Below, piece by piece: positions 19,265 to 52,690 of a stretch of 64,000 bases of DNA (the stretch's first letter is position 1; the number at the start of each line of letters is the position of its first letter). The DNA lies in IMG/VR virus record IMGVR_UViG_3300023278_002893, positions 1-64,000 of that record, one strand, 5' to 3'. The translations under genes and the position numbers were made by a program. Under the pieces are notes generated by a model. It was not told where the DNA came from. It searched no databases and was given only the letters and a program-made list of their open reading frames with translations.

Positions 19265-19266
19265 TC

Positions 19267-26733: not shown

Positions 26734-29700
26734 TTGAAGAATTTCGCTACGATCTTGAAGGCCATTACTCAAGATCAACTTCACCGGTTCAACAACCGCA
26801 TGCGCGCAAGTGGAAATACTCTTAATTTGAACGTAGAAATACGCGAAGAGAGTTTGAACATCTGTGTGGATTTCCGCACGCAAGACGAAGTAGGTACTCT
26901 GATCATTCCGCAACTTCGAAAGAACGAGTTTGGCAATTATGTCATAGGAGATCGAGTCGATCGAGCGATGTGCCCTTTCATGGTGGTCATGGACGGCAAC
27001 CCGCAACACATCAGCTACGAGAAGATGATTCTCGCAATGCTGAGCATGAACATGGAGGATCTCTTCCCCGAGCAGGGAAAGAGGAACCAAATTGGCAAGA
27101 TCCTTTGGGCGTTCTATCAAAAGAGAGGACGTCTCACGCTGGGTCAGTGCCAGAAGTTCCTCAACCAACGACTGTTCAATGCTCTGCCCCTGAGTGGAAC
27201 CTCCATGCAGGACTGGGCGATGAACCACCGCGTAATGATCTTCGATCCAATCTTCGACACTCTGAATCCCCCGGAGAAATTGGCATACCAGAGGCGCAAG
27301 AATGAATTGCTCCACCCCTGGTCCTCCATCGGAATATCCGAGGGTGCCGCCGCTACGCGGAACTACATACTCCAGAAGGATCTGAGAAACATCACTGCGT
27401 TTGGTAACAGGCACCATAACCCAATCCGAAATCTGTATTCTACCCTAGGAATGAAGGGCCCAGAAGCACCCTTGGTGATCTCCGAGGCTGCCGCGCGGTT
27501 GGAAGATCAAGGAATCGTGCGGGGTGGTTGGAACTGGATGACCGTGTTCCTGGATCTTCCCGAGACCTTCGAGGATCAAATCCTTGTTTCTGGTCGGCAT
27601 GCAGGTAAGACGGTGACCTACGAGAGAACCTTCACCGTGTTCGGTGAAGAGTCAGTAAATGTTGGAGATAACATCCTCAAGGGGAGAGTAATCGGAACCA
27701 ACGAGGACGAGAGCTCCATATATTTCGACATTGATTGCGAGCGTGCGGAAGTAATCGAGTGTAAGAACGGTAATGTGCCCTTCGACGGCCAGGATCAGCC
27801 AGTACGTATTGTTGTTCTCCGAGTCGTGTATACTTTCAAAGAGGGTTTCAAGATTACAAATCAGCACGGGAACAAGGGTATCGTAAAGGTCCTGCCTGAC
27901 CTCGGCACCGTTCAAGATCCAGTTCGTGGTGAAGTACCGATCGACGTGATCGTATCTGCCAAGTCCGTACAGAAGCGCAAGAACTTCGGTCAGATTCTCG
28001 AAGCGCTTGCCACTCGGGTCACCGGGCCGAAGAAGCGAATGGCTGTTCCCGACGATCTTCGTATCGAAGTAGCGCAGATCGAAAAGAAACTGGTCTCTGC
28101 TGGGTACCAAAAAGAAGGTACCTGCAAGGTCATCACGCCTTGGGGAGAATTCGATTCAATCTGTGGTTGGGTTCACTGGGGAGTCACCAAGACTCCTGAG
28201 GAACAACTCTGGCAGGGAAGGGATGTAAAGGCGACCAACCAACGGGGTCTTCGCATCCGAGGCAACAAGGTATCTCCCATCGAATTGAAAGCAATGACCA
28301 CCCTCTTCGGGCCCCGCTCGCAAGTGGTAAAGGAAGTGCTCTCACATCGACAAGGCCAGGACGAGGTCAGGGAGCTTCTGGACATCGTACGGGGAATGTC
28401 AGGTCTTTACCGAGACAACCTTCCCACGATCGATCCGGCCACTTTCGTATACAAACCGTCGGGTATGGGAACCTTCCATGACCAGGAAGCTCTCGTAGGA
28501 ACGGTGGCGGACGAAGAAATGTTCCCGGTCGGATGCTATATCCAACTCCCCTTCCGACTTCTGGTATCCATTCCGGATGACAGGAGTAAGGGGATACAAG
28601 AAGGTATCGCAGGTGAGAATGCCTACGAGCGATTGGGTACGGGGACTCGATACTTTGAGTTCGATCGCCTGATGGTTCCTTCTGCTGCTCTGCGACAACC
28701 GTGGAGGCACGCAACGGGAAAGCTCGGTCTGGCAGACATCGCCACACAGTTGAATCAGATACTGGAAGGTATTGATCGACTGGCACTTGGTGAGATTAAG
28801 GAGGCACAGCTCTCCACTCTAATCTTCCGCTACCTGCACCACATCGGACGTTCCCTCTCCACGAAGAACGGTAAGATCAGCACCTATGCAATGTCAACTC
28901 GCTACCCCTGGTCTTCTAAAGCCACTGCAATTCTCGGCTGCGGCCTGGAGACAAACTGGGTGGAGATCCACAAGGACATGGCACGAGACCTCAAGGTCGA
29001 GACCGGTGATTATGTCATGGTAGAACGTTTCCCGTGTTTGGGATTCATGTCAACGCGTATCCAGCGAGTGAAGGTGACCGACGATCCAGAGGCAAAGTAT
29101 GTCATCCGGGTCAGCGGCAATAGCCTGGGTTCAATGAACCTGGACTTCGATGGCGATGTTATTTATCTGATGAGCTTCCACACAGAGGGTGCCAAAGCGG
29201 AGTTGGAGCACAACTTCCACAACCCACACCCGAAGGTCAAGGAAGTCATCGACCGTCTGAACAACAAGAAGCAGCCAATGACCCGGACCATGACCCTCCA
29301 GGAAATGGAGATCATGTCCTTCGATCCAATGAGCCCAGAAGAGCACGCCGAGTTGAACGCCACATCCCTTGCTGTAAAACTCTGGACAGGGCCGACGATC
29401 GCACTTTGCTACAGCATGATGCGAATCGTGGAGGGAAATATCCCCTACGAAGACCGTGAAGCGCACATCAACATCGAGGTCTTCCTTGATAAGGTGGGTA
29501 ACTCTGTCTTCTCCCAGAAGCACGGAACGAAGAGCCTCAGAGAAGAGTGTGTGGAAGCGGTGTGTCTTGCCAAGCCGGAGGCACTGGTAGAATTGGGCTT
29601 CCCTGTAAGGGAGAGCGCCCAGCTCTGCAACATCATCCGTTCCTATGCCTCGAAGTTGGGTGTTCGAACCGACGAGGAACTTCTGGCACATTATAAACGC

Positions 29701-29898
29701 CACGTGGAAGAAGGAAAAGCAACCATCGTTAGTGCTATTGTGCGGCGCTTCCACAAGACCTACTTTGCAACCCGATCCAATCTCCACCCGCTTGATCTTT
29801 TGGAGCACCTGGAGCAAGAACCACGAGATCTCGTATCCTACCTGGTACAACAAACACTGGAGGGAGGAGATCGCGATAAGGAACTTAAGGTCGTATAG
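26734..29898 (+). CDS. single-chain beta-beta' fusion two-barrel DNA-directed RNA polymerase
   Basis: Beta-like motifs FGNYVIGDRVDRA, TFEDQILVS, KITNQHGNKG, IDVIV...RKNFGQILEA; beta'-like motifs PSAALRQP, ERFPCL, NLDFDGD; TTG start with AGGAG RBS. Confidence 0.9.
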   Translation: MKNFATILKAITQDQLHRFNNRMRASGNTLNLNVEIREESLNICVDFRTQDEVGTLIIPQLRKNEFGNYVIGDRVDRAMCPFMVVMDGNPQHISYEKMILAMLSMNMEDLFPEQGKRNQIGKILWAFYQKRGRLTLGQCQKFLNQRLFNALPLSGTSMQDWAMNHRVMIFDPIFDTLNPPEKLAYQRRKNELLHPWSSIGISEGAAATRNYILQKDLRNITAFGNRHHNPIRNLYSTLGMKGPEAPLVISEAAARLEDQGIVRGGWNWMTVFLDLPETFEDQILVSGRHAGKTVTYERTFTVFGEESVNVGDNILKGRVIGTNEDESSIYFDIDCERAEVIECKNGNVPFDGQDQPVRIVVLRVVYTFKEGFKITNQHGNKGIVKVLPDLGTVQDPVRGEVPIDVIVSAKSVQKRKNFGQILEALATRVTGPKKRMAVPDDLRIEVAQIEKKLVSAGYQKEGTCKVITPWGEFDSICGWVHWGVTKTPEEQLWQGRDVKATNQRGLRIRGNKVSPIELKAMTTLFGPRSQVVKEVLSHRQGQDEVRELLDIVRGMSGLYRDNLPTIDPATFVYKPSGMGTFHDQEALVGTVADEEMFPVGCYIQLPFRLLVSIPDDRSKGIQEGIAGENAYERLGTGTRYFEFDRLMVPSAALRQPWRHATGKLGLADIATQLNQILEGIDRLALGEIKEAQLSTLIFRYLHHIGRSLSTKNGKISTYAMSTRYPWSSKATAILGCGLETNWVEIHKDMARDLKVETGDYVMVERFPCLGFMSTRIQRVKVTDDPEAKYVIRVSGNSLGSMNLDFDGDVIYLMSFHTEGAKAELEHNFHNPHPKVKEVIDRLNNKKQPMTRTMTLQEMEIMSFDPMSPEEHAELNATSLAVKLWTGPTIALCYSMMRIVEGNIPYEDREAHINIEVFLDKVGNSVFSQKHGTKSLREECVEAVCLAKPEALVELGFPVRESAQLCNIIRSYASKLGVRTDEELLAHYKRHVEEGKATIVSAIVRRFHKTYFATRSNLHPLDLLEHLEQEPRDLVSYLVQQTLEGGDRDKELKVV

Positions 29899-33584: not shown

Positions 33585-34697
33585 ATGAACTTTGATATCA
33601 ATCCCCACCCCAAGCTGATCAACGACCACCAGACGATCCGACTCCCTAGAAAGTTGAGAAAAGAAATAGGAGTGTTGGTGGGTCAGTTCATGCAGATCAG
33701 CGGTAAGGAAACCTTAGTCTTGGAAATCGGGAAGGACCTCGATGATTTCGAGACCAGTGCTTATGTCAGTGAGTCTAACTTTAGGAAGATTGAGGGACAA
33801 CAGTTAGAGTTCAAGATACTTGACGTAACATTAGGCTGTGATCCGGAGTTTTTCATTATGTGGGGGAAGCGTCTGATATCTGCGACTACTTATCTCCCAT
33901 TCAATGGTGCAATCGGTGCTGATGGTAATTTAGGAGAGCTTAGGCCTATGTATGCCCGTCACGAAAATGACGTGGTAGCTAACCTCCAAACGCTAATCAC
34001 CCAAGTACCAACTCGTATGAAAAGAGGCTACGGTGTGTCCGAAGGGTATCCCAAAGACGGTTCCCTCTTCGACCTTCAAGCCCACTCCTATTACTATGGA
34101 CTCGCAGCTGGGTTCCATGTGCATATGGGAATACCTCCCGAAATTCTAAACACCCGTAAATCTTTCAACCGGATAGCAATGAACCATCTGGTGAAATGCT
34201 TCGATTGGTTCGTATCTGTACCTTTAGTTCCTCTCGACGAAACTCCAGGCAGAAGACTGGGAGAGACTACCTACGGACAAGCGGGAGATTACCGCACAAC
34301 CAATTCGACCCTAGAATATAGAACTCCGGGAGGATTCTATCTCAGAACACCCACACTAGCTCGGGGTATGATGGGGTTATGTCTCATGGTAGCGGAGAAT
34401 GTAGTTAGTAGGATGAAGATCGCCAGTAGGAACTTCACAAGTCTGGACAAACTAACTCCTAATGACATGCAAGAGATCATGCCTGTTCCAAAAGTAAGTA
34501 AGGTTAAAGGAACCCTGGGAGCGCGAAGCCCGCTCGCAGCGGAGGGTTGCCTGGATGAAATACAGGAAAGCTTGAAGAAATTCCCCAACTACGATAAACA
34601 TCGGCGTTCAGTAGATGATTTTTTCAGCGTAGTGAGGTCAGGTCAAATACCAGTTTCCGACTTAATCCCTAATTGGAAGGTTAATGATGCCCAATAG
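33585..34697 (+). CDS. COOH-NH2 ligase type 2 (phiEco32-like) with an extra N-terminal domain
   Basis: LGCDPEF, GADG..ELRP, GFHVHMG, RR....YGQAGDYR, LEYRTPG. Confidence 0.85.
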   Translation: MNFDINPHPKLINDHQTIRLPRKLRKEIGVLVGQFMQISGKETLVLEIGKDLDDFETSAYVSESNFRKIEGQQLEFKILDVTLGCDPEFFIMWGKRLISATTYLPFNGAIGADGNLGELRPMYARHENDVVANLQTLITQVPTRMKRGYGVSEGYPKDGSLFDLQAHSYYYGLAAGFHVHMGIPPEILNTRKSFNRIAMNHLVKCFDWFVSVPLVPLDETPGRRLGETTYGQAGDYRTTNSTLEYRTPGGFYLRTPTLARGMMGLCLMVAENVVSRMKIASRNFTSLDKLTPNDMQEIMPVPKVSKVKGTLGARSPLAAEGCLDEIQESLKKFPNYDKHRRSVDDFFSVVRSGQIPVSDLIPNWKVNDAQ

Positions 34698-36384
34698 CAC
34701 CGGACAGCGCTCGATCAGCTTTCAACAGAGGTCGAATAGACCTCCGCTGACAAGCGAAGAGTGCAGCTATCTTCTCGAACTTCTGCCGAAGATTTTGAAA
34801 GTCGGGACAGAATTCGAAACTAATCTTCCAGAAGCAGGCGCCGCGCTCGAGGTGAAAAGTGGCATAAGGTGCGTACATTCAGTTTCGCCAAGAAACTGCG
34901 TGGAGGATTGTACCAACGTAGAAAGCTGTTTGGTGGAAAGGCACCCTACATTTTGTAAGACCCGCAGTTCGGGACAATTCCTAGGTGAAAAAACCACGTG
35001 TCCGGCAGGAAACGCCGATGACATCGACGCTTGTAGAGCATGCGACAAGTGGTTACTGGATTGTCGTAAACAGAAGTGTGCCTCTTACACCCCCTTCTGC
35101 TCAGTCTGCCCGAACTTTTCAGTAGCAGGAGCTTCCGTCGTCGACGCAGACATTCGACAAGATGCGGAAAGTATTCGTCAAGAAGTAAAGAAATTACTCA
35201 GGCCGACCGAACACGTAGGAATCGTTGGTAAGTCTGGAGCACTGAGTGTGATCAAGGACGGTTCCCTACTCGGTGGCGGGATCGAAGTACCCACCGTAGG
35301 TAGAAGGGTACATTGGCAGAGCTTTTACAAGATGTGTGAGGGAATTCTTGAACCCATCATAAAACGTGGTGGATTTGTCGATGAAAGAACAGGTCAGCAT
35401 TTCCATGTACTGTCCGGTTACTTCGATAAAGGCACAACCCACGCGATCAATGATTTGGAAGTGCCCCTACCAGAGATCGTTTTGGCCAACCTTCACCAGC
35501 TACATCGAAGATACGAAGCCGCGATGTTCTGGATGATGAGTTGTGGAAATAGGATGGAACACCTCACAAGGTGGTCAAGGTTCCGGCAATCCATATACCA
35601 ATACAGCGCACTGCGCAGTCGAATGAGTACCGTGCAACAGGAATTGGCAGAAAAGATAGTATGTATGGGCGGTACCAACCAAAATGGTAAGTACGCTTCT
35701 GTTGCATATCACTTCTGCCGATTTGACGTCGCGGGGGACGTTAGTACTCTGCACTTCGAGAATCGTATTGCGGATGGATGTCTTTCCCCAGCGGTAATCA
35801 CTGCGTGGGCAATGATGTGCTATGCTCTTGTCCTCAAGGCGGTTCGACTTTCCCAATACGGAATCATGGAAGTTGGAGATAGTGAATACAACGCGGCAGC
35901 GAAAGAAGCCTCCTCCCACCTAATCGATGGAGAAAGACGAAGTTGGGACGGCAGCCGACACGCCGATACTTCAGGCATTGGACCATCGATTCCCTTCCTC
36001 CAAAGATCTTCAAGAGAGCTAATCCAACTTCTCAAACCGGAGATACACAACTTAGGGCCGGCGTTCCATATCCTAATGGAGCTGGCAGAGAAGCCCTGCT
36101 CGATCCGTCTTGCCAACGGAGACTCTTGGGACGAGATTGAATCCGAACTTTACGGACCTTATAAGCATGAAGAATCTCCATTTACCGGAAACAACGTGGA
36201 TGAGGTGCGGGAACTCATCGACCTGGCAACGATCATAGAGTGTGAGGATGTTAACGCGTGGATAGGAGAGGTCGCTGGCCATCTAGGTCAAGAGACCGAA
36301 GTCACCGAAGAAACGGTACAAAGTCTACTCGCTTCTGGGCGATATAGATGGAGCCCGGCGATCGGCTCGCTCATTACTGTTTAG
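34684..36384 (+). CDS. amidoligase (glutamate-cysteine-ligase/GS-fold, Amidoligase_2-like) with a Cys-rich insert
   Basis: VGTEFE, IKDGSL..GGIEVPT, TGQHFHV, TLHFENR. Confidence 0.75.
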   Translation: MMPNSTGQRSISFQQRSNRPPLTSEECSYLLELLPKILKVGTEFETNLPEAGAALEVKSGIRCVHSVSPRNCVEDCTNVESCLVERHPTFCKTRSSGQFLGEKTTCPAGNADDIDACRACDKWLLDCRKQKCASYTPFCSVCPNFSVAGASVVDADIRQDAESIRQEVKKLLRPTEHVGIVGKSGALSVIKDGSLLGGGIEVPTVGRRVHWQSFYKMCEGILEPIIKRGGFVDERTGQHFHVLSGYFDKGTTHAINDLEVPLPEIVLANLHQLHRRYEAAMFWMMSCGNRMEHLTRWSRFRQSIYQYSALRSRMSTVQQELAEKIVCMGGTNQNGKYASVAYHFCRFDVAGDVSTLHFENRIADGCLSPAVITAWAMMCYALVLKAVRLSQYGIMEVGDSEYNAAAKEASSHLIDGERRSWDGSRHADTSGIGPSIPFLQRSSRELIQLLKPEIHNLGPAFHILMELAEKPCSIRLANGDSWDEIESELYGPYKHEESPFTGNNVDEVRELIDLATIIECEDVNAWIGEVAGHLGQETEVTEETVQSLLASGRYRWSPAIGSLITV

Positions 36385-36404
36385 ATAGGAGGTCGTAGGT
36401 TAGA

Positions 36405-37229
36405 ATGTGTGGAATTGCAACAATCTCTATTGGGCGAGGCAGGCGCGGGAGAATTCCCTATAATAAGCTCCAAGGCCTTACCCAAAAGATCCTGGTTGAA
36501 CTGTCCGATCGAGGACAAGATGCATCAGGAATAGCGGTAGTCGGTGACGACCACTGCTTCGTATTCAAGAAACCGCTGAGGCCGGATAGATTGGTGGTTA
36601 GACCAAGATTTAGGGAAATCCTGGAAAAAATCGGGCCGGAAACAAATTTCATTATGTTGCACTCACGGGCAGCATCGGTAGGAGGTAACGAAGACAACTT
36701 CAACAATCACCCCATCGTAGCAGACCCGGTCATTGGTATCCACAACGGTACTCTCTACAACACTGAGAAACTACGCAAAAAGTTCAGTGATAGATTTTCG
36801 ACGGCGGGGAATGTAGATTCCGAGATCCTCTTCCGGATGTTCAACATGTATCTAGAAGAAGGACTAACTCCCAAACAAGCCCTGTGCAAGGTCACCGAAC
36901 AACTGTCGGGTGCTTTTACTGGGGCAGCGTTGGATCTTCGACACACCCATCGAATGTTGATGTTCAAGTTCCAACGTGATTTGGCGGTATTGCAGCTTAG
37001 TCACTACGACATACTCGTCGCGGTATCAAAACCGTATCACTACGATCGGGCGAGGGATACGATGGGACTGTCCGTGAAGGACAAGCTTTCGTATCCTAAG
37101 GAAGCAACTGCATTTTCGATTGATCTAAATGACGGGCCGGTCACAGAGCAATCAGACACTTTCCCCATTCCAGTAAAGAAAGAAGAATACTGGAAAGATG
37201 AATATAAACAGTGGGCATACTTCGGATAA
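36405..37229 (+). CDS. class II glutamine amidotransferase
   Basis: N-terminal MCG, RGQDASG, HSRAA..G....NNHP, GIHNG, NVDSE. Confidence 0.92.
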   Translation: MCGIATISIGRGRRGRIPYNKLQGLTQKILVELSDRGQDASGIAVVGDDHCFVFKKPLRPDRLVVRPRFREILEKIGPETNFIMLHSRAASVGGNEDNFNNHPIVADPVIGIHNGTLYNTEKLRKKFSDRFSTAGNVDSEILFRMFNMYLEEGLTPKQALCKVTEQLSGAFTGAALDLRHTHRMLMFKFQRDLAVLQLSHYDILVAVSKPYHYDRARDTMGLSVKDKLSYPKEATAFSIDLNDGPVTEQSDTFPIPVKKEEYWKDEYKQWAYFG

Positions 37230-37248
37230 GACAGGAGAGAAGTAAAAA

Positions 37249-38919
37249 ATGTGCGGAATAGTTGGTGTAATTCAGTATGAAAGTGCGGTAGATCGAGCCC
37301 TTCGCCAGAAGGTGCTGAAAATTCTTTTCTCCGAAACAATGATGCAGACTGAATCCCGAGGTAAAGACGCCACAGGTGTGTACCAAGTCCACAAAAACGG
37401 TGACTGGCTCATGACTAAAAAGGGAGTCAGAGTCACCGATTGGATACCTGCAATGCGGTCGGACTCCGGAAACGAAGATCCAATCGACTTCGAAGATATC
37501 GTGGGGAGCTGGCTCGAACATCCCAAAGATTTAGCCGCTGTCGTAGGACACTGCCGCGCGGCTACTGTGGGATCCAGAGGAAAAGACAACAACGACAATC
37601 ACCCCTTCGCGGTTCAGTTGGACGAGGATAACGCCATTTTAGGTATCCATAACGGTACCTTGACCAACCACGAGATCATCTTCGATCGCCTACCTGATCT
37701 TCTTCCTCGACATGGGAAGGTGGATAGCGAGTCTCTATTCCATTTCCTATACCATCTAACTAATGGGGGAACCGAACCGATCGACGGTGACATGTTGAAA
37801 TACATGGGAGAACGTGTAGAGGGCGCCTATGCGGTTATTACGATGAACACCCGATTTCCAGAACAGGTGGTAACGTTCCGTAAAGATCGGCCGATGGAAT
37901 TCTTCATGGTCGCGCCGCTTAATTGCCTCGTCATTACTTCTGAGAAAAAGTTCTTCGAAGCGGCATTGGAAAAGTACAACTTCATCCGCCAAATGCTGCC
38001 AGAGTATAAAGAACTTCCCGCCCTGAGAAGTTGCCACAGGGGACTCATGGACCGAGAGTTTCGAATCTTCGATACAAGTCTTCCTTGGCCCGAAGGACAT
38101 CACCCCACTCATGGAGATTTCGATAAGATCTCAGACGGAAAGGGGGATATGACAAAAATCAGCTCTCCCATTATAGACGACTGGAAGAGCCCGGGAAAAA
38201 CTTCCAAGATAACCCCATCCAACACGCGGAAAATAACGCCCGCGTCCAACACTTCCGTGAAAACTACTAAAGCGAATCCAGTAGTCACTTCCGCAACTAA
38301 CGCCCGGCAGGCCTCGGAGCAAGTGGACACGGTTATAGTAGAGGCGATAATTAAAGTGCCCATCGGTATGGATGACGCCGCTGCGAAGGGGATCGAGCAC
38401 GTAAAAGGACTGGGGCTCCTAGTTCAGTACGATACCATGAACGAACTGGCGAAGTCAATTGGTATAAAGGAAAAGGAACTTGAGCAGCTGAGCGGGCTGG
38501 AACTGGCCAACAAACTGGCATCCATTCACTTTAGCATCGGGCACGCAGCCGCACGACTGTCTGCTCAAAAAGAAGTTAGTGACATACGTTCCAAAGCAAG
38601 TGATAACACCAAACTTCTGGGAAGAGTTGCGGAAAAGCAAAGGAAGGCGGAAATCCATATCTGGGAACATCGCCAGCTGGTGACCATCCTTCTTGCGTTG
38701 GCGCAGGGTAATTTCAAGCTGGACGCCAGTAATGTAAAGATTTCGTTAGCCGCGTTTCCCCAACTGGCGGACGAAAAGAAACAATCCATCCTGAAATCAG
38801 CAAAGAATATATTGGAATGTCAGGAAACCAAACTACTTATCAAAAAGCTTCTGCAGCGCTTCAATGATGTCGCACAGGCTAATGCTAAGAAAATCCAGGA
38901 GTCTAAGGGGACTCCCTAG
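37249..38919 (+). CDS. class II glutamine amidotransferase with a long C-terminal helical extension
   Basis: MCG, RGKDATG, GHCRAAT.G....DNHPF, GIHNG, KVDSE. Confidence 0.92.
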   Translation: MCGIVGVIQYESAVDRALRQKVLKILFSETMMQTESRGKDATGVYQVHKNGDWLMTKKGVRVTDWIPAMRSDSGNEDPIDFEDIVGSWLEHPKDLAAVVGHCRAATVGSRGKDNNDNHPFAVQLDEDNAILGIHNGTLTNHEIIFDRLPDLLPRHGKVDSESLFHFLYHLTNGGTEPIDGDMLKYMGERVEGAYAVITMNTRFPEQVVTFRKDRPMEFFMVAPLNCLVITSEKKFFEAALEKYNFIRQMLPEYKELPALRSCHRGLMDREFRIFDTSLPWPEGHHPTHGDFDKISDGKGDMTKISSPIIDDWKSPGKTSKITPSNTRKITPASNTSVKTTKANPVVTSATNARQASEQVDTVIVEAIIKVPIGMDDAAAKGIEHVKGLGLLVQYDTMNELAKSIGIKEKELEQLSGLELANKLASIHFSIGHAAARLSAQKEVSDIRSKASDNTKLLGRVAEKQRKAEIHIWEHRQLVTILLALAQGNFKLDASNVKISLAAFPQLADEKKQSILKSAKNILECQETKLLIKKLLQRFNDVAQANAKKIQESKGTP

Positions 38920-38937
38920 GGTCGAGGAAACCAAGCA

Positions 38938-40206
38938 ATGTCCAATAAAGTGCAGCTTCGACTCATGTCCTCCTCGAAGATGTCAAATGCGGGAGAAGGG
39001 GACATTATCAGATTCCCCAAGGCGGCGAGGCAGAATTTTGGCTTCTCCAACAGCAGGGTAATGATAGGTAAAGGCCCCTACGAGATAGCTCTCAAAGTAA
39101 AGAAAGCCTACTCGGAAGATGTACGCCGGCTCGCTGTCATGATCAAAAATGTGAAGATCTCCGAAGTGGATGCCCAGTGTGTAGGGTTCGTGCACAGCAA
39201 CGTACGGAAGAGAATCGTCGCGAAGCGGGGCGGTCAAGAGGATATCTGGATTACTGAGGGGATCGGCGACATTACCGTCGGCGCAGATCCCGAGTTTGGA
39301 TTGATTGACAGCGGTGGAATGTTGGTGCGCGGTAACAATATCGTATCAAAGGTAGGTAAATTCGGAAGTGATGGTCCGAGCGTAGAAGTTCGGCCCACTC
39401 CCAGTACTAACCACCTGGAAGTGGTGGGAAGCATCTCGGACATCATGGAAAATCCGCCTGGGCGAGCCGATGATTACAAATGGACGGGGGGTGCTACTTT
39501 CAGAGACACCGATAGGGTCTATTGGTTCGGCGGACATGTTCATCTCGGGAGACCCACTCAAATTGATGCGAATGAGGCGTATCCTATCTACAAAAGAATC
39601 GCAACCGCACTTGATGGGTTATTAGCCCTGCCAATGGTGCGCTTCGATACCCCCAATCCCTGGGAACGACGAAACGGATGCAAATACGATTACGGTAAAG
39701 CCGGGGACATACGGGCAGACTATCCAGAACAAAATCGATTCGAGTACCGGGTACTTAGCGGACTGTGGGTAGTACATCCCACATTAGCTACTATAGCAAT
39801 CGGTGCCGCCAAGTGTATTGTGGAAACCGCATACGGAAGGATTGCGGAAAAAGGATTTGATCCAATATGGGCGTCACAACCTATCTCTCGGGGAGGTATG
39901 TTGAAAAGCTTTGGACTGAAGGGAGTTCGGGAGATTCAAGCGGTAGTAAATCATGCGGATCCAAGGAGAATCACCCAAGACCATTTAGACACTTGGGAAA
40001 GAAACATTCGTAATTTGGACCGGTTCAATAAGTACAGGGCGGAGATCGAGGCGATGGTTGAACTGTCAAAGGAAAACCCAGAAAACATCGTCAGCGGGAT
40101 GGACCTAAACGTTAAAAGAAATTGGCAAGAGAGACGCACGTTGCTCCCTCGGGCCAGCAAGAAACTCAGAAAGGCGCTTGACGTCGTCGAGGAGAAAAGA
40201 AAATGA
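38938..40206 (+). CDS. COOH-NH2 ligase type 2 with an extra N-terminal domain
   Basis: VGADPEF, GSDG..VEVRP, GGHVHLG, RR....YGKAGDIR, FEYRVLS. Confidence 0.87.
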   Translation: MSNKVQLRLMSSSKMSNAGEGDIIRFPKAARQNFGFSNSRVMIGKGPYEIALKVKKAYSEDVRRLAVMIKNVKISEVDAQCVGFVHSNVRKRIVAKRGGQEDIWITEGIGDITVGADPEFGLIDSGGMLVRGNNIVSKVGKFGSDGPSVEVRPTPSTNHLEVVGSISDIMENPPGRADDYKWTGGATFRDTDRVYWFGGHVHLGRPTQIDANEAYPIYKRIATALDGLLALPMVRFDTPNPWERRNGCKYDYGKAGDIRADYPEQNRFEYRVLSGLWVVHPTLATIAIGAAKCIVETAYGRIAEKGFDPIWASQPISRGGMLKSFGLKGVREIQAVVNHADPRRITQDHLDTWERNIRNLDRFNKYRAEIEAMVELSKENPENIVSGMDLNVKRNWQERRTLLPRASKKLRKALDVVEEKRK

Positions 40207-41327
40207 ACAAGGGCTACGTGTGGTACTCCACAGGATCCTCCGAAACCGGAGAGAAGTTAGCAGCAGCGTTGGGATTCGACCACGGAAAGAAGACTCCCAA
40301 CCTACCCAAGTTCCCCATACTTTTTGGGTGGGGCTGCAAAGCAGAATCCCGTGAAAAGTACGATCCCGCCAAGGTCGATGCTGCGATCGAGAACGGAAGC
40401 CTTCGAGTCCTCAACCATCCCAAGGCGCTCTCCAGCGCCCGGAACAAGTTGGGACTTCTCACACGTCTCCGGGAAGCTGGACACCACGTTCCCGGCTTCG
40501 TGAGTATCAAGGGGGTCTCAGCAATGAAGCTAGTCGCGGAGATGAAATCCGCCGTTGACGATGGTGTCATTACATTTCCATGTGTGGGCTTCAACGAAAC
40601 CCACCGAGGGAAACCGATGTTCTGCTGGACAATGGAAGATCTGAATCAAATTTTGACGGCCAACAAGAACAGAGCACGCAGTGCTATCAAGATCGACTAC
40701 GTCCGAAGCCTCGTCCAAGGTACCGAGTATCGAATTCACGTGTTCCGTGACGAAGGACTCTGCGCGGAAGTAAAGGTTCTGGCCAACGATCCAACCGCTG
40801 CAACGGCAGCAAGTCTACTCACCAAACTCAAGAAGCGCCAGGAAAAGACGGAAGTGCCGCTAAACGCCACCCAGGACGAACTTCAATTCGTGGTAAGCCA
40901 GTTGGCGTCGGACCTCGTCCGAGGACCCAGCCACATGCTGCGAAGTGTCCAACACGGTTGGGAGATGAAGCCTATTGCCGTTGGGGAAGTTCCAGCAGAG
41001 GTAGTCGTAGCAGCAATCAACGCTCTCGATACCGCAGGACTCGATGTGGGCGCAGTCAGTGTCGAGTTTATTGAGGGGAGTGCTGTGATCAGCAATGTGG
41101 TCTCCGCCCCCGGCCTCAGTGAGGAACAAGTCGGTCTGTATGTAGCAGCCATCAAATCGTTCTCCAAGGCAGGTGGATCCAAGAAAGTAAAGCCCGGAGC
41201 AAATAAGGCAGTCAATGCGGGGGAGGGAAAAGCAACGCGCGAGATCATCGGCAAAATTACCCGCAAAGTGCGGCTAGGAGATGTTTCTCAGAAGCAGGCG
41301 GAGGCTATTCTGGAAAGCTTGGGGTAA
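40203..41327 (+). CDS. ATP-grasp (YheC/D-like) protein with degenerate catalytic motifs
   Basis: WGC, VLNHP..L..A.NK, EYRIHVF; GAVS and SNVVSAP where active enzymes have GAVD and EVN. Confidence 0.7.
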   Translation: MNKGYVWYSTGSSETGEKLAAALGFDHGKKTPNLPKFPILFGWGCKAESREKYDPAKVDAAIENGSLRVLNHPKALSSARNKLGLLTRLREAGHHVPGFVSIKGVSAMKLVAEMKSAVDDGVITFPCVGFNETHRGKPMFCWTMEDLNQILTANKNRARSAIKIDYVRSLVQGTEYRIHVFRDEGLCAEVKVLANDPTAATAASLLTKLKKRQEKTEVPLNATQDELQFVVSQLASDLVRGPSHMLRSVQHGWEMKPIAVGEVPAEVVVAAINALDTAGLDVGAVSVEFIEGSAVISNVVSAPGLSEEQVGLYVAAIKSFSKAGGSKKVKPGANKAVNAGEGKATREIIGKITRKVRLGDVSQKQAEAILESLG

Positions 41328-41332
41328 AGAAC

Positions 41333-41803
41333 ATGCTCTATTTTCCCATATCGCACCTTGAAATCGCCGGGCAGATCGCGGAGCTAATCAATAACTTAAG
41401 CGACCTGTCTAAGCAAAGAACAGCTGACGATATCCTTAAAGGAAAAACCCACTATGTCGTGGAGACTCACGGTAAGTTCGTGATCGGGGCGGTGGGTATC
41501 CACAAGGTCAGCTATGAACTTTCGGAACTAAAGCACCTAGTGGTTCATCCCGATTGGAGAGGCAGAAGTTTGGGCCACTTCATAAGTAAGAGAGCATTGT
41601 CAGTGTGTGGTACCCCGTCAATCTATGCCACTGTAAGAACCTCGAATCTTGCCAGCCTCAAATCTCTAACCAGATCGGGATTCGTAAAATCCCACGAAAG
41701 AATCGCAGGCGAGCATAGACTTGCTGTACTGATAAGGGCGGCTCCTAAATGCCAAGTTATAACATCTGCGTCGAGGCAGACCTTGTCCTCAGAACAAGGT
41801 TAG
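41333..41803 (+). CDS. GNAT family acetyltransferase
   Basis: ELKHLVVHPDWRGRSLG; N..S...L...GF. Confidence 0.88.
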   Translation: MLYFPISHLEIAGQIAELINNLSDLSKQRTADDILKGKTHYVVETHGKFVIGAVGIHKVSYELSELKHLVVHPDWRGRSLGHFISKRALSVCGTPSIYATVRTSNLASLKSLTRSGFVKSHERIAGEHRLAVLIRAAPKCQVITSASRQTLSSEQG

Positions 41804-42957
41804 AGTGCCTCGAAGCGAAGTTCTCTGGTCAAATACACAGGGCTGAAAATTCCAGCGGGAATAAGCGTGTTACTGTCGAAACCAGGGGACTTACCGAACT
41901 AGGGAACTCCGGTACGATATCATCTTTGAATCTGAAAAACTACTACATAACGAACATCTGGTGGAGGTACGACGGGGAGGCCACCACCGACACGATGGTA
42001 TTCTCCCACGGAGAAGAAGAACAGAACGAGGCATTCGAAACTATCCTGGAACTTCTAGGAGACGAATTCGAGGAAGAAGAAATTGGGAGCGGAGAGGAAA
42101 TGATAGCAATAAATGGGCAGCCTCGACGAATCGAAGTACTGCTCACAATGATTAGTTCTCCCACAGTAGGGCGAAAGGTACTCGTTCTGGATGTTATGAA
42201 CACATTCGGTCCCCGAAACCTAAAAACATTGTCAGGAAGAACTTGGAAACCAGACGGAACGCTGGAGAAGTTCAAGTCCAGCGGCATGAACGATGCTGTA
42301 TGGTGTATTAAAGAGCTCAGACGATTTAAGGCGGAACAAAGTAGACCAGTAATCACCCATATAGGCTTCGCAGATACTAGCAGACAGATTAAAGCATGGG
42401 AAGACCTCGTCGCATTCACAAGATCACTCAACTCCTTCGAAAGGTCCGTTCTGGAAAACTGGATGCCGGCGGATGACGATGATGGCGACGAAGGTTCTCT
42501 CTACGGCCAAGGAACACATTGGACAAAAAGGTATCCCCAGCATGACGAGAACCCAAACATCACCACCACAAAGCCCCAACCTGCGATGTTCAGGGTAAGT
42601 GGAGATAATCTGGGGAAAATAATTCACCTAAGCACCGCCGAAAAAGAGGTGAGCAGGCCTACCGATGAGAGACAGCTCCCATTAAAGGAGTACCTGGAAA
42701 AAAAGGCCGAAGCCGGATCGGCAACCTCCGAAGTGGGTGTTGAAGTTTCGGCTACAGTTGGGGTGGGTGTGGTGGAGAATGGGGTGGATAAAGTGGATAC
42801 CCCCGGCACTGATACTGGCACTTCTGATGCCGGTGATAATAATGTTAGCCCTCTCTCTCGTTGTGATTGCGGGTCTCCTATATGCACCGTATGCTTTGCT
42901 GAATCTAGTGCCGTGGACGCGCTACTTCCGGGGCACAAACCGCCAACGCTTCCCTGA
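41749..42957 (+). CDS. hypothetical protein with an acidic low-complexity tail and terminal CDC..IC..C motif
   Basis: 402-aa ORF. Confidence 0.6.
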   Translation: MPSYNICVEADLVLRTRLECLEAKFSGQIHRAENSSGNKRVTVETRGLTELGNSGTISSLNLKNYYITNIWWRYDGEATTDTMVFSHGEEEQNEAFETILELLGDEFEEEEIGSGEEMIAINGQPRRIEVLLTMISSPTVGRKVLVLDVMNTFGPRNLKTLSGRTWKPDGTLEKFKSSGMNDAVWCIKELRRFKAEQSRPVITHIGFADTSRQIKAWEDLVAFTRSLNSFERSVLENWMPADDDDGDEGSLYGQGTHWTKRYPQHDENPNITTTKPQPAMFRVSGDNLGKIIHLSTAEKEVSRPTDERQLPLKEYLEKKAEAGSATSEVGVEVSATVGVGVVENGVDKVDTPGTDTGTSDAGDNNVSPLSRCDCGSPICTVCFAESSAVDALLPGHKPPTLP

Positions 42958-42961: not shown

Positions 42962-42990
42962 TTGACTTGGAGGTACAGGTGACGTATTAT
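42962..42990 (+). promoter_or_regulatory. sigma70-type promoter upstream of ruvB
   Basis: TTGACT-N17-TATTAT. Confidence 0.6.
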
Positions 42991-43044: not shown

Positions 43045-44076
43045 ATGATTACGCTCGACACTTTTATCGGGAACACCGAACTAATTCAGCTCCTGAAAAT
43101 AGAAGTAATGGCAGCAAGAATGCGCAACAAAGAAATGCCCCACGTTTTACTAAAAGGCCCGGCTGGGTGCGGAAAGACTACCCTCGGAGAGGTACTCGCA
43201 CGCGAATTTGGAGGGGAGCTGACAACGCTCACCCCCAATACCGCAAAGAACGCGGACGACTTAAGAAAGTTCTTCCTGGAGATGCCGGATCAGGGGTACG
43301 ATGAGGAAGGCAAAATAGTTGGTAAAATAGATCCTCAAATCGTATTCATCGACGAGGTTCACCAACTGTCTCTGCTAGCCCAGGAGCTGTTGGGAATCGC
43401 AATGCATGACTGGAGACTTCCTGTCAGGGTAGGGGGCAAGGATGAGTTCGAATGGGTACCTAGATTTACATTAGTGGGTGCAACTACCGTACCTGGAAAA
43501 CTATCTAAACCCTTCCGAGACAGATTCAAGGTACAAGCCCTGTTCGAAACCTATTCCCACAGAGAATCTCTAGAGATAGTAGATGTTCACGCCAGGAATG
43601 AAGGTCTCCAGCTGGGTGAGGGTGTCTCAGATTCGATAGCAAAGAGATCCAGAGGAGTGGGACGTCTCTTGGTAAGGTATTTAGACAGACTTGCATCAGC
43701 GGCAGTGGTGGCATCTCAGGTCAGACCGGAGGGAAGTAATGTTATTACTTTACCTCTTGCAAATAAAATGTTTGCAGATTTCCTAAAAGTGGACGATCGG
43801 GGGCTGACGAAAACGGACATAAAGATCTTAAAGCAGCTCCACCTTCTGGAAGATCCAGTAGGATTAGATACCCTAGCTGCGATAACCAACGAAGAAAAAT
43901 CTACCATAGAACAAGAAATTGAACCATATTTAGTGCAGGAGGGGCTACTAGCCCGAACTAAACGTGGTCGAGTTATAACAGACGAAGGCAGACGATATTT
44001 ACACACCGCCGGCTACATCAAACTGGCGCCTACCTCGGCGAGAGGGGGCCGCATTATGGGAGCATCGGAGAAATGA
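43045..44076 (+). CDS. ruvB: Holliday junction branch-migration AAA+ ATPase RuvB
   Basis: HVLLKGPAGCGKTTL, FIDEVH, FTLVGATT, PFRDRF, EPYLVQEG...RTKRGR. Confidence 0.92.
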   Translation: MITLDTFIGNTELIQLLKIEVMAARMRNKEMPHVLLKGPAGCGKTTLGEVLAREFGGELTTLTPNTAKNADDLRKFFLEMPDQGYDEEGKIVGKIDPQIVFIDEVHQLSLLAQELLGIAMHDWRLPVRVGGKDEFEWVPRFTLVGATTVPGKLSKPFRDRFKVQALFETYSHRESLEIVDVHARNEGLQLGEGVSDSIAKRSRGVGRLLVRYLDRLASAAVVASQVRPEGSNVITLPLANKMFADFLKVDDRGLTKTDIKILKQLHLLEDPVGLDTLAAITNEEKSTIEQEIEPYLVQEGLLARTKRGRVITDEGRRYLHTAGYIKLAPTSARGGRIMGASEK

Positions 44077-44909
44077 GTCGAGGAAGCGTAGAGTATCTGA
44101 AGAAAAAACTTAAGGGTCCCATCCTAGAAGAAATCATCGACCCCGCGGACTACTCGCGCGACGACATCATGAAGTCATACTTCCGAGAAATCTTATTCCT
44201 AGCGTCTCGTTTTACTCGCCCCTACGTAGATTACGAAGACCTGGTAGATGAGGGAATCATAGGATTGCTTGACGCGATCAAAAGATTCGACATCAAAAAG
44301 GCCAATAACAATCCCAAGGCATTCCACAACCTCGCTATCGTCCGTATAAAGAGCCATATGTTCGAATTCTTCCTAGCGAACAATACTCAATATACGATTC
44401 CGAACTACATGGCACGGGCAATGGAATTGCTCGGACAAATTCGAGCCACTATCAGCAACTCCAACTACCGAGGGAACAAACAGGAAGCTCTTCGACACCT
44501 CGTATGTGAAGACTTCGAGAACACCGCGGCTCCCGAGGCTGTCAAGAAACTAGGGGTAGTGAAAGGCAAGATGCAACGACTTGCTATCAGCTCCGCTAAG
44601 AGCTATGAAGATATGGTACTTACAGTATTGAAGGTCGAAAGGGACATCGAAAGCTACGAAACGCCCGGCAGTGAGGTAGAACCCACACCAGAAGAAATCA
44701 CTGCGGACAGGGAATATATAGAGAAATTCCTGGACAACCTAAATCCCGACGCAAAGGCTGTCATCACCATGGTCTTAGAGGGCAAGTCCCTGAAGGAAGC
44801 TGGTAGAGAGCGTGGATTCTCTCGTGAACGGGCGCGGCAAATCAAAGAGGCTACGATGAAATACTTCAGGGCCACGCCTATGTACAAAGAATCCGTAGAA
44901 AAAGAATAA
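44073..44909 (+). CDS. sigma-70 family RNA polymerase sigma factor
   Basis: Region 2: EDLVDEGIIGLLDAIKRFD; region 4: SLKEAGRERGFSRERARQI. Confidence 0.88.
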   Translation: MSRGSVEYLKKKLKGPILEEIIDPADYSRDDIMKSYFREILFLASRFTRPYVDYEDLVDEGIIGLLDAIKRFDIKKANNNPKAFHNLAIVRIKSHMFEFFLANNTQYTIPNYMARAMELLGQIRATISNSNYRGNKQEALRHLVCEDFENTAAPEAVKKLGVVKGKMQRLAISSAKSYEDMVLTVLKVERDIESYETPGSEVEPTPEEITADREYIEKFLDNLNPDAKAVITMVLEGKSLKEAGRERGFSRERARQIKEATMKYFRATPMYKESVEKE

Positions 44910-44944: not shown

Positions 44945-46426
44945 ATGAAGCGACTAAGAGCACTGCGGGAGCTTCGAAAAGAGTTAGGGGCAGAAGTTTT
45001 CTTGGTTGGAGGAACGGTCAGAGACCTGATCCGACGAAGAGAACCCAACGACCTGGACGTTATGGTACGAGGAATCGCCCCCGCTGAATTCGAAACTTTC
45101 CTACGTAAAAGGGGTGCCCTAGAACTTGTAGGTGCATCCTTCGGAGTATATCTTTTCAGACCCACCGAAGAGGGAGGGCAGATCGAGATCGCATTCCCCA
45201 GAACTGAAATTAGCACGGGCGACAAGCACGGTGAGAGTGGTTGGAATGCCGTTCCGGACACCGATCTATCCGTGGAAGAAGATTCAAAAAGACGAGATTT
45301 CACTATCAATGCGATGTATCTCAGCATTGATGATGTGACAGAGAGCGGAGAGTTTAAGCGCGAGCGCGTGATTGATTTTCATAACGGGTTGGATCACATA
45401 AAGAAACGCCTTATCGTAGCAGTGGGAGATCCCGAAGAGAGGATTGAAGAAGATCCACTACGTATGATGAGGGCAATGGTTCTAATAGCCCGAACCGGTT
45501 ATCGTTTGGAGGGCAACACCTTCGGCGCGATCAAAAGAAACGTTGGAAAGGTACAATCAGTGTCCGCTGAACGTATCCGAGATGAGTTCATAAAGATCAT
45601 GGAGGCGGAGAAACCTTCTCGCGGATTCAAAGCCATGTCCAGAACTGAACTTCTAGGAATAATCTTTCCAGAACTACACGCATGTACAGGCTGCGGTCAA
45701 AACCCCAAGTACCACTCGTACCCAGTCTTCGAACACAGCATCACAGCGGCAGACGCAGCTTGCTCCCTGACTGACAGGTTAGATGTTAGGTTCGCAGCAC
45801 TTTGCCACGATTTGGGAAAGGTTCCTACGCGGGAAGTGCGCCCGGGAGGTGATGGCCCAAACGACGTCTCGTTCCATAACCACGAGATGGCATCCTGTAA
45901 GCTGACTTACGCTTTCATGTGCCGATTGAAGTTCCCAAAGAAGTTCACCGACGCGGTGATTGCGTTAGTACGAATGCATCAATATAAATACGATCGAGAG
46001 TGGACCGATAAGGCTGTGCGAAGGTTCATTCGGAACATCGGACTCACCCGGGCAGACCTGGACGATCTCGAAAACCACCCCCAGTTCCTACTCAGGATGG
46101 CGGATCGAATGGGAAACCAACTGAAAGTACACCTCCCCGTAACCATCAAACAGAGAGACTTTCAGGGGCGACTTCGAGAAGTGTATGAAAGCTCAGGAGC
46201 CCACAGCCTTCGGGACTTGAAGATCAATGGTCGAGATCTCATAGAACGATTCGTGATCGCTACGGGTCCTGTAGTGGGTAAGGTAATTGCCCACCTGTTT
46301 GACGCGGTGGAGGAAGCTCCGGAACTAAACAACAGGGACGACCTTTTCCGTCTTGCCGGATTGTTCCTAGAGGAGGAAGAAAATGGAAGTGATCAAACTA
46401 ACCGAGTCAGCTCAAGTACAAGCTAA
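44945..46426 (+). CDS. cca: CCA tRNA nucleotidyltransferase with HD domain
   Basis: LVGGTVRD...DLD, RRDFTINA, EDPLRMMRA, ERIRDEF, HS...LCHDLGK. Confidence 0.93.
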   Translation: MKRLRALRELRKELGAEVFLVGGTVRDLIRRREPNDLDVMVRGIAPAEFETFLRKRGALELVGASFGVYLFRPTEEGGQIEIAFPRTEISTGDKHGESGWNAVPDTDLSVEEDSKRRDFTINAMYLSIDDVTESGEFKRERVIDFHNGLDHIKKRLIVAVGDPEERIEEDPLRMMRAMVLIARTGYRLEGNTFGAIKRNVGKVQSVSAERIRDEFIKIMEAEKPSRGFKAMSRTELLGIIFPELHACTGCGQNPKYHSYPVFEHSITAADAACSLTDRLDVRFAALCHDLGKVPTREVRPGGDGPNDVSFHNHEMASCKLTYAFMCRLKFPKKFTDAVIALVRMHQYKYDREWTDKAVRRFIRNIGLTRADLDDLENHPQFLLRMADRMGNQLKVHLPVTIKQRDFQGRLREVYESSGAHSLRDLKINGRDLIERFVIATGPVVGKVIAHLFDAVEEAPELNNRDDLFRLAGLFLEEEENGSDQTNRVSSSTS

Positions 46427-46718
46427 GGAACTGCTGGCAAGAGAATCAGAAGCACCTGCGGGTCTGAGAGTGGAGGCAGTAGCGGGGAGCTGTAATAACT
46501 TGCAGTATAGAATAGGATGGGACAATCCCAAGGAAGGGGATGAGGTTTTTACTTATCCAAATGGAATGGTTGTCATGGTAGACCAGAAATCCTCTGCGAT
46601 GCTGAAGGGCAGCGTCCTAGAATTTCACAACACAAGCGAAGGATCTGGCTTCGAGGTCATCAATCCTCGTTCCACAGGATGTTCCGGTTGTGAGTGCGGT
46701 AATGGTTCTAATGTCTAA
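46383..46718 (+). CDS. iscA: HesB/IscA family Fe-S cluster assembly carrier
   Basis: LRV...GSCN..QY, VDQKS...LKGS.LEF, NP.....CECG. Confidence 0.85.
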   Translation: MEVIKLTESAQVQAKELLARESEAPAGLRVEAVAGSCNNLQYRIGWDNPKEGDEVFTYPNGMVVMVDQKSSAMLKGSVLEFHNTSEGSGFEVINPRSTGCSGCECGNGSNV

Positions 46719-51516: not shown

Positions 51517-51855
51517 TTATTCCTGACGCGCTACCTCTATCTTACGAAACAACTCATTGACAGTGGTGCATGTCTTACATGCATTTTCTGGATCATTCAG
51601 AGCTACAATCCAATATTCTTTCCAAGACTCTGCGTGTAATTCATTAGGGAAATCTGGAACTATGGCAACCGGACGGTCATCGAAAACAGATTCCTCTATG
51701 AAATGTGCGCCATAAACATCCGAGAACGCCCTAAGAACTTCAACATCAGCCATAATCACCACGTCCCAGACAGACTCGTCTACTTTTACCAGTACAAAAC
51801 TGGCCTTAACTGGTTCCGTTATCGCCATTATCGTCATCCTTTTTGGGAGGCGCAT
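51517..51855 (-). CDS. hypothetical protein
   Basis: 112 aa; true start probably a few codons downstream. Confidence 0.5.
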   Translation of the reverse strand: MRLPKRMTIMAITEPVKASFVLVKVDESVWDVVIMADVEVLRAFSDVYGAHFIEESVFDDRPVAIVPDFPNELHAESWKEYWIVALNDPENACKTCTTVNELFRKIEVARQE

Positions 51856-52423: not shown

Positions 52424-52425
52424 AA

Positions 52426-52680: not shown

Positions 52681-52690
52681 ATAATAACTC

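Follow-up and report, generated by a model that had tools for sequence, protein, structure and literature searches.

Several groups of small phages (phiEco32, 7-11 and GAP52; LUZ24, PaP3, tf and UFV-P2; RIO-1 and HP1) carry an amidoligase cassette of the phiEco32 type, the founding description of which was reportedly given by Iyer et al. in 2009. In the cassette, a COOH-NH2 ligase of the PF14395 family, an amidoligase of the glutamine synthetase (GS) fold, a class II glutamine amidotransferase (GAT-II) of the N-terminal nucleophile (Ntn) type, a RimK-like ATP-grasp protein and a gamma-glutamyl cyclotransferase of the AIG2/GGACT type are encoded on one strand, amid early and replication genes. 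The order in GAP52 is ligase, x, amidoligase, GAT-II ... ATP-grasp ... cyclotransferase, and in RIO-1 it is cyclotransferase, GAT-II, ligase, x, x, amidoligase, ATP-grasp (x, another gene); the LUZ24-like phage UFV-P2 has a similar cluster. Here, we analyze an operon of seven genes, A to G, in IMG/VR record IMGVR_UViG_3300023278_002893, the genome of a jumbo phage (297,725 bp, complete by CheckV). The operon lies at 33585-41803 of the stretch that was analyzed, the first 64 kb of the record (hereafter, the window).

Other described systems resemble parts of the cassette. In the pupylation system of actinobacteria, PafA and Dop are GS-fold enzymes that form a gamma-glutamyl isopeptide on a protein and provide a deamidase and eraser. 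RimK, an ATP-grasp ligase, polyglutamylates ribosomal protein S6, and the R2K clade of ATP-grasp proteins includes relatives of CDC123. In PuuA/PuuD, EgtA/EgtC and BtrJ/BtrG, a gamma-glutamyl ligase is paired with a C26 hydrolase, an Ntn hydrolase of the GAT-II type or a cyclotransferase. Lastly, the thymidine hypermodification clusters of M6, ViI and PaMx11 are phage-encoded and direct post-replicative, amino-acid-derived modifications. R2K.2 members found in phages are predicted protein modifiers and are often encoded beside GNAT or COOH-NH2 ligase genes (PMC4431377), and amidoligase and amidotransferase genes occur beside thymidine-hypermodification genes in viral metagenomes (PMC8989533). 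For RIO-1-like phages, the cassette bears the name 'peptidoglycan modification cassette' in PMC5498523, which follows Iyer 2009 and Hardies 2013. This label is a conjecture. We found no experiment on any cassette member in the literature, which agrees with a preliminary description of the operon that knew of no established substrate for clusters of this type.

We are highly confident that the operon is an expanded, lineage-specific form of the phiEco32/LUZ24/RIO-1 cassette, and the link to phiEco32-like clusters drawn in the preliminary description is upheld by the joint occurrence of the operon's families in unrelated small phages. All of the classical enzyme types are encoded by the jumbo phage, and the order ligase, amidoligase, GAT-II ... 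ATP-grasp is kept as A-B-C ... F. The operon also sits on the same strand as its neighbors and among early or replication-transcription genes, as do the small-phage cassettes. Several features set it apart. An extra GAT-II and PF14395 pair (D-E), similar to that of RIO-1, is inserted in the operon. Its PF14395 ligases, A and E, are divergent and have an N-terminal double-psi beta-barrel (DPBB), and the amidoligase, B, falls outside the Pfam family Amidoligase_2 and has a cysteine-rich insert. The ATP-grasp protein within the operon, F, is degenerate, and an intact copy is present only as a satellite (g48602). A GNAT gene occupies the usual place of the cyclotransferase, which is encoded outside the operon. 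Finally, the known cassettes are in small podoviruses, whereas this one is in a 298 kb jumbo phage.

Organization and conservation of the operon

The seven open reading frames (ORFs) are all on the + strand and tightly packed. Successive genes from A to G are separated by -14, +20, +19, +18, -4 and +5 nt (negative values, overlaps), Shine-Dalgarno-like motifs (of the AGGAG or GAGG type) are found 5' of most of the starts, and no convincing + strand terminator was found within A-G. Thus, both the seven contiguous, partly overlapping genes and the operon-like packing of the preliminary description were borne out, with each ORF exactly where it had been placed. The first good promoter-like site 3' of the block is at 42962-42990, beyond an eighth gene, H. 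Because A starts only 8 nt past the end of a helicase gene, the transcription unit may start further upstream. From the sequence, A-G, probably together with H, are probably one co-directional transcription unit that is possibly continuous with the upstream helicase gene. None of the A-G ORFs has a transmembrane-like segment or an obvious signal peptide.

H (41749-42957, + strand, 402 aa) overlaps G by 55 nt and is the last gene before the promoter-like site. The protein is acidic (pI 4.9) and fast-evolving, has a C-terminal cluster of cysteines and is present in the near subclade of relatives (see below) only. H has no match to a Pfam or PHROG family and no meaningful match in the Atlas. Its Atlas model has a pLDDT of 0.30, which suggests that H is probably disordered. 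We consider H to be a candidate adaptor or substrate.

Conservation of gene order in relatives, on which the preliminary description had staked its interpretation, was found in eight related loci, in each of which the genes run helicase, A, B, C, D, E, F, GNAT, RuvB-like, sigma. Four of these loci are 38-72% identical to the window (the near subclade) and four are 25-35% identical (the far subclade). Because the block is kept gene for gene in these eight other loci, chance is excluded. The catalytic residues of A, B, C, D and E are invariant across the orthologs, down to 25-35% identity, and the operon family extends to more than 100 metagenomic jumbo-phage contigs. Clustering of the same families in unrelated podoviruses, in other arrangements, provides independent support. 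The far subclade has a different ORF in place of H and an extra, poorly conserved ORF of 267-364 aa between the two GAT-II genes, C and D (L005:12411-13505, L010:12513-13316 and L011:12457-13449); no similarity of this extra ORF to a gene of the cluster or to a Pfam family was detected. Searches by megablast and tblastn with the block, B, E and the neighboring RNA polymerase-like gene turned up no GenBank phage, and the lineage is without a cultured relative in the GenBank phage collection.

Enzymes of the operon

The two COOH-NH2 ligases, A (33585-34697, + strand, 370 aa) and E (38938-40206, + strand, 422 aa), match PF14395 with E = 6.7e-17 and 2.5e-19, respectively (62 and 70 bits; gathering cut-off, 25). 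In an alignment of 17 sequences, the residues D86-P-E88, E118, R120, H178/H180 and E244/R246 do not vary. A and E each score ~36 bits against phrog_3815, compared to 241 bits for a third PF14395 ligase elsewhere in the genome, and at the sequence level they are divergent from the canonical PF14395 type. E has 133 homologs, all of equal length.

Based on profile comparisons and a structural model, we conclude that both A and E carry a predicted DPBB of the Cdc48/VAT-N type, which is newly noticed here. The barrel comprises residues ~1-82 of A (33585-33830) and residues 1 to ~108 of E (38938-39273). A profile of the N-terminal domain matches the DPBB entries 7dvf, 7dvc and 7dg7, which are proteins derived from VCP-like ATPases, with E-values from 2.5e-7 to 7.6e-3. 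The model of the E domain by itself (pLDDT 77) has a beta-beta-alpha-beta topology that occurs twice. In Foldseek searches, its top matches are the DPBB of VCP-like ATPases and the N-domains of VAT, p97 and PEX1, and that of NSF is also found (matches include 7dbo, 1cz4, 1wlf and 3qq7; target-normalised TM up to 0.72). By sequence and by structure, the domain is thus nearest to the AAA+ N-domain type and not to the RlpA or barwin type. In AAA+ unfoldases, a barrel of the Cdc48/VAT-N type is a module that binds partners, substrates or adaptors. The barrel is found in A, E and all of their orthologs; it is absent from the canonical third ligase and was not detected in the ligase of RIO-1.

B (34684-36384, + strand, 566 aa) has no Pfam or PHROG match. 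Membership in PF12224 (Amidoligase_2) by hidden Markov model was rejected, since there was no match even at E <= 1. The fold evidence was kept: the model (pLDDT 84) has a GS/YbdK/amidoligase fold, with matches to YbdK/gamma-glutamyl-cysteine ligase 2 (GCS2), GS, PafA/Dop and 'amidoligase' clusters in AFDB. Among PDB structures, YbdK and GS match best, at low TM scores (0.25-0.48), and Dop (7oyh) and PafA (4bjr) rank within the top 25. B aligns weakly, motif for motif, with the Amidoligase_2 proteins of RIO-1 and GAP52 (E = 0.003), and its place in the gene order equals that of the amidoligase in the small-phage cassettes. Because of this fold and position, and not a Pfam model, we consider B a putative amidoligase of an undescribed family. 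The gene-by-gene identities in the preliminary description therefore stand by profile match for A and C-G; for B, the amidoligase assignment stands by fold and fails by Pfam model.

The residues E43/E45, D192/S194/E201, R207/R208, H239/H241 and E359/R361 of B, which form a GS-like set of motifs, are invariant in 51 sequences. B has 112 homologs, all of which are on viral-type contigs. Comparison by hhalign found no relation between B and PF14395 families, which places them on separate branches of the GS-like fold. The cysteine-rich insert (residues ~55-150; 34846-35133) has 7-12 conserved cysteines, seven of which are invariant in the 51 sequences, in an arrangement that is like a zinc ribbon yet gives no significant match. 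Amidoligase clusters elsewhere include fusions to SWIM, RanBP-type zinc, LIM and BTB modules.

C (36405-37229, + strand, 274 aa) is a stand-alone Ntn (class II) glutamine amidohydrolase (GATase_6, E = 3.5e-13). D (37249-38919, + strand, 556 aa) has an amidohydrolase domain of the same class (GATase_6, E = 1.4e-9) in residues 1 to ~250, followed by a low-complexity linker and a helical C-terminal half. Across 16 sequences, there is no variation at M1-C2 (with Cys1 as the nucleophile; C has MCGI), R36, R88, N114-G115 (the oxyanion Asn-Gly) and D138. From these residues, C and D are predicted to bind a glutamyl moiety whose alpha groups are free, as in glutamine or gamma-glutamyl-X. The glutaminase domain of D aligns with the long GAT-II of GAP52 and RIO-1 (probability 97-99%) and the rest of D does not: its C-terminal half has no homology to the classical GAT-II tails and gave no lead in the Atlas.

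F (40203-41327, + strand, 374 aa), whose start overlaps the stop of E by 4 nt (ATGA), is an ATP-grasp homolog of the RimK/R2K type (phrog_2599, E = 1e-14). Orthologs of F match PF08443 (RimK) at 41 and 28.6 bits, above the cut-off, and also PF18299 (R2K_2). Among orthologs of F and the satellite g48602, PF14243 (R2K_3) is matched as well, and RimK and R2K are separated by weak scores. The preliminary description singled out the ATP-grasp protein as the exception to otherwise intact motifs, and the alignment agrees: GAVD ... ExN has become GAVS ... SNV in the window, and four near relatives likewise have S/N and [STG]-N-[VI]. The acidic metal ligands are thus missing from F of the window. In the far subclade, F retains D and E-[VI]-N. 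Judging from this alignment, F of the near subclade, having lost the Mg-ligand residues, is probably a conserved pseudoenzyme or scaffold.

The satellite g48602 (48602-49453, + strand, 283 aa), 7.3 kb 3' of the operon, is an intact RimK-like ATP-grasp protein (phrog_2599, E = 7.8e-24) that keeps ExN and GAVD, and it had been correctly picked out as an additional ATP-grasp gene. It is also present in two other complete genomes of the lineage (G001 and G002), one from each subclade. By tblastn, it matches 84 phage records, where the matching genes adjoin 'amidoligase' genes; it is g48602, and not F, that resembles the ATP-grasp protein of the phiEco32, RIO-1 and LUZ24-type cassettes. The idea that g48602 compensates for a dead F is unsupported, as the far subclade has an intact F plus the satellite. 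The ATP-grasp copies also give weak matches to D-Ala-D-Ala ligase.

The last gene of the operon, G (41333-41803, + strand, 156 aa), encodes a GNAT acyltransferase that matches PF00583 (E = 1.7e-7) and three other GNAT models. The acyl-CoA-binding R/Q-x-x-G-x-G/A loop is present in the orthologs, and the first Gly is replaced by Ser in the window copy.

Companion cluster, satellites and genomic neighborhood

The preliminary description saw no gamma-glutamyl cyclotransferase. This is true of the 64-kb window, but not of the phage: the only PF06094 (GGACT) gene of the genome is at 283333-283758 on the + strand. It is the first gene of a companion + strand cluster (283333-288010) with the order cyclotransferase, a protein of 267 aa without assigned function, PF14395 ligase (336 aa), a second such protein (300 aa), Peptidase_C26 (234 aa) and a third (300 aa). 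The ligase (284.6-285.6 kb, + strand) is the canonical third copy without an N-terminal barrel, and the Peptidase_C26/class-I GATase is of the gamma-glutamyl-hydrolase type. Assuming a circularly permuted record, the companion cluster is ~48 kb from the operon. In both G001 and G002, the cyclotransferase is within 2-3 kb of the third PF14395 ligase and away from the operon. Together, the operon and the companion cluster provide the full classical enzyme set: ligases are concentrated in the former, and enzymes that cleave gamma-glutamyl groups in the latter. The last 300 aa protein of the companion cluster is a paralog of the 267 aa protein. The two were also considered as members of the g21095 family (below) and rejected (probability 0.2); they are paralogs of each other only.

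Three more satellites are upstream of the operon. The gene g23752 (23752-24420, + strand, 222 aa) encodes a class-I glutamine amidotransferase/Peptidase_C26-like protein (PF00117, 2.1e-29; PF07722, 1.2e-8), which upholds its earlier description as a class I GATase. The tandem genes g21095 (356 aa) and g22302 (324 aa), at 21095-23276 on the + strand, had been counted as two more ligase paralogs, and this claim did not survive. They are 38% identical to each other, have no Pfam or PHROG match, and align with the A/E profile over the C-terminal half of the ligase only (hhalign probability 87%, E = 3.8e-6, 112 columns). Their invariant columns include no DPE, HxH or ExR motif. They appear to be degenerate relatives of the PF14395 C-terminal half and, judged by these motifs, not ligases in a functional sense. 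The pair is present in G001 and G003 and was not found in G002. A tRNA-Leu(taa) gene (22182-22268) is wedged between the two.

The + strand genes of the window extend from ~0.5 to 51.4 kb, with a strand switch at ~51.5 kb. Besides 14 tRNA genes and a PRPP-synthetase-like/NAMPT pair, these include genes for an RNA polymerase beta-like protein, SSB, a helicase, a RuvB-like ATPase, a sigma factor and a CCA-adding enzyme. The RNA polymerase beta-like, SSB and helicase genes are upstream of the operon, and the RuvB-like, sigma factor and CCA-adding enzyme genes are downstream. The RNA polymerase beta-like protein (26734-29898, 1054 aa) has weak similarity to Rpb2_6 only. Its gene and that of the sigma-70-like factor (44073-44909) flank the operon and are kept in all relatives; they probably specify a divergent, phage-encoded transcription apparatus.

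Other genes of the window merit mention. The 14 + strand tRNA genes form an array at 1116-22268. One of them (1116-1192) is left without a type by ARAGORN, which assigns it an anticodon of four bases, 'ttca', in an 8-nt loop. If the anticodon is tca, the tRNA would decode UGA; a role in suppression or frameshifting and an artefact of the caller are all conceivable. At 18404-20754, the PRPP-synthetase-like gene is directly 5' of the gene for nicotinamide phosphoribosyltransferase (phrog_448, E = 1e-174). The two are an NAD-salvage pair, and such pairs have been proposed to counter NAD-depleting host defences. An IscA/SufA-like gene for Fe-S assembly (46383-46718), 4.6 kb 3' of the operon, is syntenic in relatives and may be relevant to the cysteine cluster of B; in a paper on OM43 phages, sufA is likewise listed for phages with amidoligase and GATase genes. 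An ORF of 250 aa (16528-17280) has a weak C-terminal match to PEP-CTERM (E = 7e-4, just below the cut-off) that, if real, would suggest that the host is Gram-negative and has an exosortase. Lastly, genes for a B12-binding radical SAM enzyme (55748-57268) and a glycosyltransferase of family 2 (60157-61104) are part of a minus strand block at 51800-64000. This block might form a module of its own, for modification or for surface glycans.

Predicted chemistry and acceptor

The operon encodes three GS-fold ligases (A, B and E) and two Ntn glutamine (gamma-glutamyl-amide) hydrolases (C and D), all with complete catalytic residues, together with a GNAT. We consider it very probable that their products carry out amide-bond or gamma-glutamyl chemistry. 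In the pathway that we envision, the ligases would activate a carboxylate as an acyl-phosphate and join it to an amine, generating peptide bonds or isopeptide bonds of the gamma-glutamyl type. Alternatively, the activated carboxylate would be amidated with ammonia freed from glutamine by C or D. The GNAT would cap a free amine, and gamma-glutamyl groups would be trimmed or removed by the cyclotransferase and the C26 hydrolase, and possibly also by C or D. Such a pathway is the most economical interpretation of an inventory in which enzymes that form or cleave gamma-glutamyl-type amides predominate. Together, these steps would constitute a writer/eraser set, and the target might be a host or phage protein that is modified in early-to-middle infection.

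Several features argue for a macromolecular target, most likely a protein. A and E have barrels of the Cdc48/VAT-N type, B has a cysteine-rich insert resembling a zinc finger, the nearest characterized fold relatives of B include the protein ligases PafA and Dop, and the ATP-grasp proteins are of the RimK/R2K type. Tentatively, we propose that the operon specifies a cytoplasmic multi-enzyme machine for the ATP-dependent formation of amide bonds on a macromolecule, most likely a protein. That the acceptor is a protein is, taken by itself, a possibility that we favor without holding it probable.

Several points weigh against this proposal. The acceptor is deduced from accessory domains only, and the literature offers no experiment on any cassette member. 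There is no small, tag-like ORF inside the block. DPBB domains are also found in proteins that bind glycans or peptidoglycan (RlpA, MltA and expansins), and among cradle-loop barrels, those like AbrB bind DNA. In addition, the flanking genes are as collinear as the block itself, so that synteny alone is no proof of a functional linkage.

A more specific version of a protein-directed pathway would resemble pupylation. The PF14395 ligases, guided by their DPBBs, and the amidoligase with its zinc-type insert would tag particular proteins of the host or phage, early in infection, with gamma-glutamyl groups or short peptides. The GNAT would cap the tag, and the GAT-II, C26 and cyclotransferase enzymes would be the deamidase, eraser and recycling arms. 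PafA and Dop are carboxylate-amine ligases of the GS fold, and the model of B matches both. However, there is no sequence-level relation between them and B, no Pup-like tag gene was found, and there is no link to a proteasome. We use PafA/Dop as a working analogy and not as a claim of membership, and we regard tagging in this form as unlikely.

The enzymes could instead remodel cell-wall precursors, acting on UDP-MurNAc-peptide or on the stem peptide of lipid II. Amidation of D-isoglutamate or meso-diaminopimelate, or the addition or removal of gamma-linked residues, could then serve superinfection exclusion or the tuning of lysis. Gamma-glutamyl and amidation chemistry suits stem peptides, for which MurT/GatD is a precedent. 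The label applied to the RIO-1-like cassette, the weak D-Ala-D-Ala-ligase matches of the ATP-grasp copies and the glycan-strand binders among DPBB proteins all fit this possibility. However, the published reading is purely a hypothesis, no Mur-ligase-fold protein is present, the barrels are nearest to AAA+ N-domains and not to RlpA, and the operon is beside replication and transcription genes, not lysis genes. For these reasons, we think that a cell-wall target is rather unlikely.

It is similarly conceivable that the phage makes and breaks small gamma-glutamyl conjugates of polyamines, amino acids or a glutathione-like thiol, with the aim of diverting the host's nitrogen or redox pools, or of producing a small effector or secondary metabolite. 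B is nearest in fold to YbdK/gamma-glutamyl-cysteine ligase 2, and C and D keep the Arg and Asp that hold the free alpha-carboxylate and alpha-amino groups of a glutamyl moiety. Peptidase_C26 enzymes of the PuuD type, GGACT and Ntn amidohydrolases of the EgtC type cleave free gamma-glutamyl compounds, and the NAD-salvage genes in the window show that the phage invests in metabolism. All of the enzyme types of the PuuA/PuuD, EgtA/EgtC and BtrJ/BtrG pathways are encoded by this phage. However, those pathways use one ligase each, on small-molecule or carrier-bound targets, whereas this phage has at least four ligases with accessory domains of a type suited to macromolecules. Three or four different ligases, a pseudo-ATP-grasp, two DPBBs and a cysteine-rich insert would be unusual for a simple metabolite pathway, and the block encodes no transporter, no pyridoxal phosphate (PLP) enzyme and no other tailoring enzyme. 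On balance, a small-molecule product seems improbable to us.

Hypermodification of nucleic acid, in which an amino-acid-derived group is added to, or amidated on, phage DNA bases or tRNAs and thereby evades restriction or other defences, is very unlikely. It would fit with the amidoligase genes found beside thymidine-hypermodification genes in metagenomes, and with an Atlas cluster in which Amidoligase_2 is fused to 'GNAT-phage-like' and 'DAM-like' domains and which is automatically named 'antirestriction'. The position of the block, between the helicase and SSB genes and the RuvB-like gene, near that of the CCA-adding enzyme and in a window with 14 tRNA genes, is also compatible with it, as is DNA binding by AbrB-type barrels. 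However, the 5-hydroxymethyldeoxyuridine (5-hmdU) DNA kinase (PF18748) and the amino acid:DNA transferase (PF18724) of the known clusters are absent from three complete genomes of this lineage: neither family, the accessions of which were verified on phage M6 gp51 and gp54, has a match at E <= 1 in that of the window, G001 or G002. The thymidylate synthase (ThyA) is canonical (405 bits). Since the hallmark genes are absent and thymidylate synthase is canonical, the known 5-hmdU route is rejected. Furthermore, LUZ24 and phiEco32 carry the classical cassette, and no hypermodified base is reported for such phages in the literature examined.

It is extremely unlikely that the genes have no joint function and are independent or decaying neighbors held together by the collinearity of the lineage: the flanks are equally collinear and F and g21095/g22302 are degenerate, but the same families cluster with different gene orders in unrelated phage lineages, the spacing is tight or overlapping, and the catalytic residues are invariant at 25-35% identity.

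The interpretation in the preliminary description is, as a whole, partly supported; its functional part, a multi-step pathway that amidates or peptidylates a protein, a nucleotide or a cell-wall precursor, is so broad that it could hardly be wrong. Annotations of the cassette date back to 2009 and cover many phages, among them Pseudomonas phages of the LUZ24 group that are relevant to therapy. The jumbo-phage version is the richest form of the cassette seen so far. It has clues that the small versions lack: barrels on two of the ligases, a cysteine-rich insert in a third, a conserved ATP-grasp protein that is probably a pseudoenzyme, and a split between putative writers and erasers. We suspect that the extra domains could be used as handles for finding the long-missing substrate. 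If the target is a protein, then the operon would specify a new viral machinery for post-translational modification, and the tagging model would also explain the small-phage cassette. If the target is instead the cell wall or a nucleic acid, then the operon would represent a new chemistry for host takeover or anti-defence.

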